Positions 20,824 to 22,198 of a stretch of 64,000 bases of DNA are shown in pieces; positions within the stretch are counted from its first letter, which is position 1, and the number at the start of each line of letters is the position of its first letter. The stretch is from NCBI RefSeq assembly GCF_052425735.1, contig NC_135764.1:3100001-3164000 (forward strand), read 5' to 3'. The notes beneath the pieces were generated by a model. It did no database searches. It had not been told where the DNA came from and saw only the letters and a list, made by a program, of their open reading frames with translations. The translations under genes and the position numbers were made by a program. Source of the stretch: Oculina patagonica. Taxonomy: Eukaryota.

Positions 20824-22198
20824 ATGAAGTTTGTTATCGTGGCCGTTTTCATGGCATTCGTGTTGGCGGTTGGTGGTGATGCAGCGTTCGTTCACAGCGT
20901 TACGAACAAAACACTGATCATCAGTGGTACTGCTAACGTAACCACTAACATTCAGCTGCATGTTCCTATCGAAGAGATTTGGGTCGGTTTAACTGAAGGT
21001 AAAACCCTGAAAAATAATAATAACTTCGATAATATTTTATACACCCTTGAATGTCACAATCAAGTTACGAACAAACTAATCGTGAATCCGACGAGACATG
21101 AAATTGATCGATTACATTTCCAAGTACGTTTTGCCATCTTCGTTGCACCTAGCCTGTCGGAAAACACCGCGTAAATTAAACTATTGAACATGTTTCTGTT
21201 TTCACACTTAAAGGCCACCGATATCCCATCATTAACAGTGGTGACACCATTGCTTTGCGGTCGGCACACAGCAGCTACTCGAAGTATTGGTTGTGGTGTT
21301 ATGTAGGTTTCTGCATCTGGCGCAACTATGGTACTATTATCACCTCCGCAGGATGGTCCTCTTGGACAAGGTACATCATGTTTACCATCACTGCCAAGGG
21401 AAAGACGGACGGAGAGGCAATCAACAGCGGTGATACAGTGTCACTCAGCTTACACGCCTATGACAGCAGTTACCGGCTGTATTGTGGCTCATCTTCCAAC
21501 AGCGTGTGTTGCGCTAACTCGTACGTACACCTGACCTGTACCTTAGCCTGTAAGACCTTAGCCAAAATATATCTGCACTCAAAAGTTACATTGCTAGCCT
21601 TGATTTTAGATCTTGGAATGTTTTACTTCTTGATTTTGCCACTCAGATCCGTTGTTATGACGCAATATCGGTCAATATCATGTCGCTCTAAATTCATTTA
21701 ACACTTATCGAGTTCAACTCAAACGTAAGTAAAGCCGTTTTTGACCATTTGTTTAACTTGGAGATAACAATTATTTTTTGTGATTGCCGCAAATTTCCGT
21801 AAATTCATTTTGGTACATTTGAGACAATATCTACCCTTTAATTACAACCCCGTAGTTGGAGATATTTTTTAATTTCGTTACCAGCTTGCTTGACTGGTAT
21901 TGAAAATGATGGTAGATCGTTATTTTTTAGAGTCACCAGTTCAATGACAGGAGGCGCCTGGCTGACATATTCGTACGCCACTTTCGAGATCTACGCCAAG
22001 AACGCTGATGATGATACCCCTGTGCAATACGGTGATGTGGTGGGCTTGAAATTCCCGTACAGTTCCAACAGCGCCTGGCTGACCCGCGACAGTAGCTACA
22101 GCAAATATTATCCCCGTAGCTGTAGCAGCAGTAGCAAGTCATCATGCGCAAGAGAAAACTCTTGGACTGGCTTCAAGATCTTCAAGAAGTTGTCATAA
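20824..22198 (+). CDS. Paralogue A4, 249-aa secreted protein
   Basis: Exons 20824-20998, 21214-21520, 21931-22198, in frame, canonical splice sites; loops WLWCYVGFCIWRNYG and AWLTRDSSYSKYYP. Confidence 0.9.

Follow-up and report, generated by a model that had tools for sequence, protein, structure and literature searches.

A tandem array of predicted secreted beta-trefoil proteins with fast-changing hairpins in the coral Oculina patagonica

Among the described systems, Tachylectin-2 of Oculina and other corals is a putative recognition gene with high amino-acid diversity and positive selection (PMC2880987). It encodes a beta-propeller, and its evidence comes from allelic polymorphism, not from a tandem array of paralogues. 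The R-type (ricin B) lectins and mytilectins of marine invertebrates are secreted beta-trefoils with three pseudo-symmetric lobes. In each lobe of an R-type trefoil lectin, strand beta2, strand beta3 and the beta3-beta4 loop form a sugar sub-site around an aromatic residue. Here, we analyzed a stretch of 64,000 nucleotides (the window) from the Oculina patagonica chromosome record CM126641.1 (assembly GCA_052425735.1), in which three-exon genes for secreted proteins of about 250 amino acids are arranged in tandem. The focal gene, A2, is one of the A-type copies of this array, which also contains B-type copies. Our best explanation, to which we assign a probability of roughly 0.6, is that the A-type array encodes diversified secreted beta-trefoil binding proteins whose hairpins have changed faster than neutral DNA. 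By analogy, the elements that form the sugar sub-site of the R-type lectins would be the same elements that vary in the coral family.

By sequence, the coral proteins are related to the C-terminal domain of the SE-cephalotoxin-like proteins, which are about 1050-1100 amino acids long and carry EGF, TSP1 and LDLa modules ahead of this domain. With the domain of Protopterus (XP_043921898.1), the homology extends over the whole trefoil (profile hidden Markov model (HMM), E = 1.4e-8, positions 59-243). When the family was aligned with this domain by hhalign, a probability of 97.9% and E = 4.5e-13 were obtained with 31% identity over 169 columns, a comparison made with homologues such as that of lungfish. 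The motifs SG..IAL, WL.C...C...CPG, W..C, F.I.A.G and G.PI..GDTV.L are common to both. In contrast to the SE-cephalotoxin-like proteins, the coral proteins are free-standing trefoils with only a signal peptide and a short N-terminal segment, are encoded in tandem and possess hypervariable hairpins. EGF, TSP1 and LDLa modules were absent from the coral proteins (224-252 amino acids) in a Pfam scan, and the full SE-cephalotoxin-like architecture was not found in them. Judged by this homology, the coral family is a free-standing version of the SE-cephalotoxin-like C-terminal domain.

In a search of the profile HMM against 1.84 billion representative proteins, only 32 clusters were found below 1e-30. 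The named members come from Oculina, Orbicella, Acropora, Montipora, Porites and the anemone Exaiptasia. Within the data at hand, the family appears restricted to hexacorals (stony corals and a sea anemone). Weaker full-domain matches (1e-8 to 1e-5) were found at the C-terminal ends of EGF/TSP1/LDLa proteins of about 1050 amino acids, one of which, from lungfish, is named SE-cephalotoxin-like; another profile match was the C-terminal end of a sponge astacin protease. No description of the family was found in the literature searched. The family is undescribed, whereas the phenomenon, a tandem family of secreted binding proteins with positively selected loops, is known. A scan of P0001 and P0125 against the local copy of Pfam did not recover the precomputed entries PF23835 (an Acropora cervicornis two-gene fusion model) and PF27743/PF27742 (SE-cephalotoxin-like proteins); the C-terminal trefoil may already be covered by PF27742. 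No PDB chain was matched significantly by single sequences or by the family profile, and the PDB sequence matches to Pizza and gp120 were spurious.

The GC content is about 38% across the window, and its open reading frames (ORFs) are short. Searches by translation detected a three-exon gene repeated on the + strand. In A2, the spliced coding sequence of 750 nucleotides is open and encodes 249 amino acids. According to the structural model described below, the product is a secreted single-domain beta-trefoil of about 25 kDa. The first-pass annotation of the window had flagged the interval 21286-22110 as coding for hypervariable loops at equivalent positions of each repeat. This interval is the trefoil-coding core of A2, from just upstream of loop 1, over intron 2, to just past loop 3. 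The parts of A2 are as follows.

20824-22198, + strand: focal gene A2, intact, three exons, canonical GT-AG introns
20824..20998, + strand: A2 exon 1, codes for the signal peptide (residues 1-20) and then for 39 N-terminal residues that include two NxT sites (ATG, hydrophobic N-terminus, GT donor in phase 1)
21214..21520, + strand: A2 exon 2, trefoil repeat 1 and most of repeat 2 (AG/GT borders placed as in the annotated paralogues)
21931..22198, + strand: A2 exon 3, rest of repeat 2, repeat 3 and stop codon (boundary mapping)
21294..21332, + strand: loop 1 of A2 (WCYVGFCIWRNYG), beta2-beta3 hairpin of repeat 1 stapled by a disulfide, more variable than any other segment in the family (model, dN, entropy)
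21360..21377, + strand: loop 1b of A2 (SWTRYI), end of the beta3-beta4 connection of repeat 1 (alignment, selected site 113)
21483..21931, + strand: loop 2 of A2 (CGSSSNSVCCANS, split by intron 2), beta6-beta7 hairpin of repeat 2, moderate variability (pairwise omega, selected sites)
22085..22105, + strand: loop 3 of A2 (RDSSYSK), beta10-beta11 hairpin turn of repeat 3 (model, alignment)

Exon 1 of A2 stays open through intron 1 for 116 codons (20824-21174). Since stop codons occur in the equivalent stretch of the other copies, the read-through portion is intron sequence.

The AlphaFold2 model was built from a family alignment of 21 sequences with the A5 protein (P0002) as the query. This protein shares 80% identity with the focal protein, and residue and site numbers below follow P0002. 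The mean predicted local distance difference test (pLDDT) score was 79.6 and the predicted template modeling score 0.78, with pLDDT 88-95 over most of residues 61-250. DSSP assigned 12 strands to the model (69-75, 85-89, 94-98 and 117-122; 136-141, 148-151, 161-164 and 182-186; 200-204, 212-217, 220-225 and 243-247), which form three four-strand repeats with pseudo-threefold symmetry, as in a beta-trefoil. The sequence repeat GD.[IV].L ... WL ... C..C ... F.I likewise occurs three times within the protein. A Foldseek search against PDB returned beta-trefoils at probability 1.0, namely the N-terminal domains of RyR and IP3R, the MIR domains of SDF2 and Pmt4, and CBM42, and the best 50 matches examined were beta-trefoil domains. 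These MIR domains and CBM42 were the best structural matches (Foldseek E 1e-6 to 1e-4, target-normalized TM-score 0.66-0.75). They have the 12-strand pseudo-threefold fold in common with the coral family, with a sequence identity of 8-14%. Unlike them, the coral family has hairpins stapled by three to four disulfides. No Pfam MIR (PF02815 and relatives) or CBM match was significant; only Ins145_P3_rec appeared, at E 0.14-0.16, and it scored about 12 bits where the cut-off is 23.

In the model, loop 1 corresponds to the hairpin that strands 85-89 and 94-98 form as beta2 and beta3 of repeat 1; it is stapled by Cys89-Cys94 and has a pLDDT of about 93. Loop 2 is the disulfide-closed beta6-beta7 connection (residues 152-160), and loop 3 is the beta10-beta11 turn (residues 218-219 plus flanks). 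Thus, the variable loops are the beta2-beta3 hairpins of the three repeats, in agreement with the equivalent positions proposed in the first-pass annotation. The same annotation had suggested that the three loops may form one binding face. In a beta-trefoil, the three beta2-beta3 hairpins together cap the barrel at one end, and the pseudo-threefold axis relates them to one another. Because of this relationship, three separate sub-sites, as in trivalent lectins, would be at least as likely as a single paratope.

Most family members possess eight Cys residues. The CPG...SSC pair is lost in A1-A3, and half of it is lost in A5 (residues 99 and 112, window ~55566-55607); the number of Cys residues is odd (seven) in A1, A2 and A5. 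At the loop 1b position, most of the family has the Cys that pairs with the CPG Cys. Loss of this pair in A1-A3 would free the tail of loop 1, the part in which sites 100 and 113 are variable. A CC doublet follows loop 2 in several family members. The confidence of the model is low (about 60) in the segment between the signal peptide and the trefoil. This N-terminal segment of about 20-40 residues is missing from some Acropora and Oculina members (for example, P0043, Acropora muricata isoform X2, as compared with P0048), so on sequence grounds it is probably dispensable or alternatively spliced.

The framework segments SGDTIALR, FTITAKGK, GDTVSLS and VTSSMTGGAWLTYSYA.FEIYAKN were all present, and they change little or not at all among the A copies. 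Both sequence and length varied in the segments that follow the WL/RL strands, and every loop string listed in the first-pass annotation was found. Loop 1 is YCYTSYCYWINRG in A1, WCYVGFCIWRNYG in A2, YCYTSYCSWYNYG in A3, GCHTTHCDWHGCPGG in A4 and A6, and WCSPSSCHWAACPG in A5, and DCTKASCGWTNCQG in the B-type copy at 16757. The loop 3 set comprises FGGL, RDSSYSK (A2), FLTSPWG, NSGGK, WYSNK and FSGRH, and its length among the A copies is 4-7 residues. The six loop sets had been pooled as hypervariable. This description holds for the A copies, but the sixth set (DCTKASCGWTNCQG / FSGRH) belongs to the B subfamily, in which loop 1 is almost invariant. Among 24 A-like proteins of several genera, the entropy peaked at 88-100, 113-117, 143, 153-163, 216-220 and 240, and was highest in loop 1.

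Tyr, Trp and His together account for 28% of the residues at variable loop positions of the Oculina copies, as compared with 12% in the scaffold (p = 6e-5). Family-wide, the values are 27% and 12% (p = 8e-13). Aliphatic residues are depleted at the variable loop positions. Of the aromatic/Ser composition that had been proposed for the loops, the aromatic part was therefore borne out. The Ser part was not, because Ser makes up 17-19% of loops and scaffold alike and about 18% of the whole protein.

The selection tests were performed with five copies, A1, A2, A3, A5 and A6. In the scaffold, the synonymous divergence (dS) was 0.15-0.31 and the ratio of nonsynonymous to synonymous divergence (omega, dN/dS) was 0.14-0.41. 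Thus, the A-type scaffold is under purifying selection. The Jukes-Cantor distances of introns 1 and 2 were 0.06-0.27, with about 0.2 as the typical value. In loop 1, dN was 0.27-0.79 in the pairs of A copies, and omega against the local dS was 1.5-7.6, above the value of 1 that diversifying selection has to exceed. The nonsynonymous p-distance of loop 1 and loop 3 together was 0.30-0.57, which is larger than the scaffold synonymous divergence in 10/10 A pairs (Fisher p 0.045 to <1e-5). For the sister-like pairs A1-A3 and A2-A5, the Fisher p values were 0.038 and 7e-5, respectively. The proposal of diversifying selection in the loops was thus supported for loops 1 and 3 of the A copies, but not for loop 2 as a whole in the pairwise comparisons or for the conserved B-type loops. 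In the one Orbicella pair that could be used for replication in another genus, the omega of loop 1 was about 1.8, which was not significant.

A tree-free count was also made. The 14-codon loop 1 window requires at least 24 amino-acid changes among the five A copies. In neutral simulations (star tree, every codon neutral), a branch length of 0.10, which fits the data, gave 12.6 +/- 3.2 changes in this window with a maximum of 23 in 400 runs, and the 95th percentile for the best window anywhere in a fully neutral protein was 23. With a branch length of 0.15, the upper-bound divergence, 17.6 +/- 3.5 changes were obtained. At these divergences, the contrast between loop and framework exceeds what chance would give.

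Codon site models were fitted with our own GY94/F3x4 implementation, in which all branch lengths were optimized, and each repeat segment was fitted on its best of 15 topologies. Twice the log-likelihood difference (2dlnL) between M1a and M2a was 31.0, 28.6 and 8.8 for repeats 1, 2 and 3, respectively. The values for M7 and M8 were 33.1, 29.5 and 9.9, so that M8 was favored in each repeat segment, and those for M8a and M8 were 30.0, 28.4 and 8.7. Whichever of four topologies was used for a segment (one of its three best or the worst of the 15), the M1a/M2a comparison remained significant, and 2dlnL was at most 7.5 in 16 data sets simulated under M1a. The fast class contained about 9-12% of the codons, with omega 5-17. 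Sites 95, 97, 100, 113, 143, 159, 161, 162, 190, 217-219 and 236 had a posterior above 0.8. The hairpins hold most of these sites, and the clusters 95, 97 and 100; 159, 161 and 162; and 217-219 follow the three hairpins along the sequence. Two sites fall in neighboring loops, namely site 113 (repeat 1, beta3-beta4 loop) and site 143 (repeat 2, beta5-beta6 loop). The M1a/M2a test of the whole gene on a single tree (2dlnL = 64.8) was set aside because gene conversion or unequal exchange is active among the copies. Since informative sites are in conflict on one tree, the per-repeat fits, the tree-free simulation and the pairwise tests were used.

The B-type copies served as a control. Four copies were compared by codon, and a fifth copy, which is partial, matches them in the core sequence of loop 1. 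The older B-type pairs have dS 0.40-0.53, exceeding that of the A copies. Nevertheless, 0-1 nonsynonymous and 0-2 synonymous differences were found in B-type loop 1, older pairs included. These results suggest that the loop 1 position is functionally constrained in the B subfamily and is not a mutational hotspot.

These results show that the scaffold is kept by purifying selection and partly homogenized by gene conversion. The beta2-beta3 hairpins have diverged by point substitutions and short indels, outpacing neutral DNA since the duplications. This divergence is strongest in repeat 1, where the variable positions 95 and 97 alternate around the invariant Trp96 in the stapled hairpin, and strong in repeat 3. 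We propose that the protein acts as an extracellular binding module whose Tyr/Trp/His-rich hairpins contact the ligand, and the A-type array would be a germline-encoded repertoire of differing specificities. The B-type copies may retain one conserved specificity. A binding role is inferred because the homologous domain serves as a C-terminal appendage of extracellular multidomain proteins and a protease, because the nearest structural neighbors are binding modules, and because the sugar sub-site elements of R-type lectins match the variable elements. By analogy, the role is most likely lectin-like recognition of glycans on microbes, symbionts or prey, and protein targeting, as in a venom component, is the alternative. 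The model also gives a fold and a likely binding role to the uncharacterized C-terminal domain of the SE-cephalotoxin-like proteins. The array shows the features of a recognition repertoire, since its paralogues lie in tandem, their scaffold is conserved and codons with omega above 1 are concentrated in the putative contact loops, with the caveat of recombination.

The binding mechanism could be the same while the proteins are venom or defensive toxin components, or beta-trefoil protease inhibitors, and not immune or symbiosis lectins. Their loops would then keep pace with targets in prey or predators, or with proteases. Toxin families typically form tandem arrays in which the signal peptide is conserved and the mature region is hypervariable, and the layout of the present array resembles them. 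The homology to the C-terminal domain of the SE-cephalotoxin-like proteins points in the same direction, but to our knowledge no toxic activity has been assigned to this domain. Cephalotoxin-like proteins have been reported in coral venom and skeletal proteomes (PMC3748352; bioRxiv 10.1101/2025.02.10.637440). However, the 'cephalotoxin-like' protein published from coral skeleton matches the toxin at its N-terminus and not in the trefoil domain. As for inhibitors, Kunitz-STI proteins were absent from the best 50 Foldseek matches, and no Pfam Kunitz_legume match was found. Thus, the toxin or inhibitor role is a serious possibility, though a rather unlikely one.

Several observations weigh against diversified binding proteins in general. 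No significant Pfam match was obtained with the exon translations, the whole proteins or the family profile. The QxW motif is absent in 26/28 family members and a triple QxW occurs in none; there is no QxW in the Oculina, Orbicella, Acropora, Montipora, Porites and Exaiptasia members, no Pfam Ricin_B_lectin match was found, and by these measures the proteins are not ricin B lectins. In our codon models, the posteriors are empirical (naive empirical Bayes, NEB) and multi-nucleotide mutation is not modeled. The selected sites 190 (P/D) and 236 (A/R) each show only two states, which differ by two nucleotides, and it is doubtful that they are more than artefacts. Moreover, indels make the loop 3 alignments uncertain.

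Other points on this side also bear on relaxed constraint alone. In this case, the hairpins would be surface loops that tolerate change and drift neutrally (omega about 1), indels would be frequent, and ligand-driven selection would play no part. The pairwise omega of loop 2 as a whole is 0.2-2.2, near neutral. The sample is small, as no more than five independent A copies were analyzed, and the choice of loops was made with the data already in view, because they look variable. When the whole protein was conservatively taken to be neutral, a scan yielded a p of only ~0.03 for loop 1. With the branch length set to 0.20, the neutral simulation gave 21.8 +/- 3.3 changes and the significance was gone, so the neutral test fails if the true pairwise neutral divergence is 0.4, as compared with the measured value of about 0.2. 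However, dN of loop 1 is 2-3 times the intron and synonymous divergence, and omega = 1 for the fast class was rejected by M8a/M8 in all three repeats. The near invariance of loop 1 in the older B-type copies indicates that the loop is functionally important in this fold. Relaxed constraint alone is therefore considered improbable.

A concerted-evolution mosaic is the other explanation to be weighed. Here, the loop lineages would be old, gene conversion would have homogenized only the scaffolds in Oculina, and the scaffold dS would underestimate the age of the loops. Gene conversion or unequal exchange occurs among the copies: 35 informative sites support ten different splits of the A copies, and the best topology is not the same across the repeats. 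Such recombination can inflate tree-based site-model tests, which counts against our selection results as well. The 3' flanks of A3 and A5 are nearly identical (distance 0.017). The segmental duplication of a B-A unit (14015-16587 and 49800-52367, continuing to 22419 / 56608) decreases stepwise in identity (99.4%, 97.7%, 92.4% and 80.7%), and this gradient from 99% to 81% suggests a recent conversion or duplication tract over an older duplicate. On a scaffold-only tree, Oculina A1, A2, A3, A5 and A6 form a tight species-specific clade, yet the His-rich loop 1 (A6) resembles that of one Orbicella copy elsewhere in the tree, and the Tyr-rich loop 1 (A1 and A3) resembles those of other Orbicella copies. 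Thus, part of the diversity may be old.

On the other hand, if the loops were older than the scaffolds, their synonymous sites should also be more diverged. The synonymous change in loop 1 was not raised, with about 9.3 differences per about 62 sites summed over the pairs (about 0.15, from only about 6 synonymous sites per pair), and it was not above that of the scaffold (about 0.2). The introns that adjoin the loops are also about 0.2 diverged. Furthermore, the survival of divergent loops through conversion would itself need selection for diversity. We regard the mosaic, like relaxed constraint, as an unlikely account of the loops. The loop types seem either to recur by convergence or to persist while the scaffolds are homogenized; selection on the loops is implied either way, and the difference lies in the age of the diversity. 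Intrinsic hypermutation of the loop is ruled out, because B-type loop 1 is conserved and the synonymous change of A-type loop 1 is not raised. A biomineralization protein was also ruled out, since the family has no acidic or low-complexity character and is present in the non-calcifying Exaiptasia.

Corals lack adaptive immunity and must discriminate symbionts, commensals, pathogens and neighbors. We know of few coral candidate families with diversified specificity. With diversified binding proteins as the preferred explanation, an unannotated secreted hexacoral family, tandemly expanded, with a rigid scaffold, three fast aromatic hairpins and a conserved sister subfamily in the same array, is a testable candidate. 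A more far-reaching and speculative proposal, which we consider a long shot, is that the A-type array is a hexacoral-specific germline variable recognition system. Its stapled hairpins would set the specificity, and its paralogues, possibly also its alleles, would discriminate microbes, Symbiodiniaceae strains or conspecific tissues. If true, the array would be a coral counterpart of the snail FREPs, the sea-urchin 185/333 and the expansions of C1qDC and mytilectin in bivalves. It would then also be a candidate for specificity toward symbionts or in allorecognition. If the loops reflect only relaxed constraint and gene conversion, this is an ordinary fast-evolving secreted gene family.

Besides A2, the following copies were found in the window.

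1982-3359, + strand: A1 (protein P0006), intact, exact exon mapping
31803-33225, + strand: A3 (P0005), intact, exact exon mapping
35343-37260, + strand: A4, near-duplicate of A6, frameshift at ~37220
55044-56388, + strand: A5 (P0002 = ACROYT_G024240), intact, protein used for the model
58493-61980, + strand: A6 (P0012), intact, all eight Cys retained, intron 2 of 2.5 kb
41245-48778, + strand: divergent paralogue D (P0059), one additional intron
16751-19412, + strand: B-type copy, exons 2 and 3, conserved loop 1 CTKASCGWTNCQG (translated search)
52675-53684, + strand: B-type copy, exons 2 and 3, recent duplicate of the copy at 16751
11439-12240, + strand: B-type copy, partial, runs into the assembly gap 12540-13039
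385-648, + strand: B-type exon 3 at the left edge of the window

A5 is 100% identical to ACROYT_G024240, which is annotated as 'hypothetical protein'. A4 and A6 are about 97-98% identical (dS 0.025), and the frameshift of A4 replaces the last beta-strand by an unrelated tail. From its sequence, A4 is probably either a pseudogene or the product of an assembly error. We did not repair it, and its sequence entered the analysis only as far as the frameshift. Intron 2 is 2.5 kb long in A6 and about 0.4 kb in the other copies, and the extra length is probably another insertion. Four B-type copies or fragments are present in the window, and one of them is cut by the assembly gap, a 500-base run of N. 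Antisense ORFs of 133-134 amino acids lie on the minus strand opposite B-type exon 3 (295-696, 19056-19460 and 53331-53732). They are most likely no genes, and their conservation only mirrors that of the sense strand. Between A2 and A3, remnants of a non-LTR (long terminal repeat) retrotransposon were observed on the minus strand (23377-24790 and 26593-27222; zf-RVT match, E = 1.2e-9).

At least six A-type copies are present in the Oculina patagonica array of roughly 100 kb. Two flanking loci on the same chromosome hold more copies, and the cluster, at about 3.08-3.18 Mb, is bounded by a TRPM2-like gene and a C2-domain gene. A comparable array, made up of A-like and B-like copies and one pseudogene, is present in Orbicella faveolata, and Porites evermanni has a single copy at its locus. 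One A-like copy of Orbicella faveolata (MZGG01001139.1, 917-2214) contains two frame changes near 1535 and 2050, and its second hairpin Cys is missing (YCHTSYFYW). In other corals, contigs of about 1 kb encode full-length family proteins, which suggests that they are spliced transcripts.

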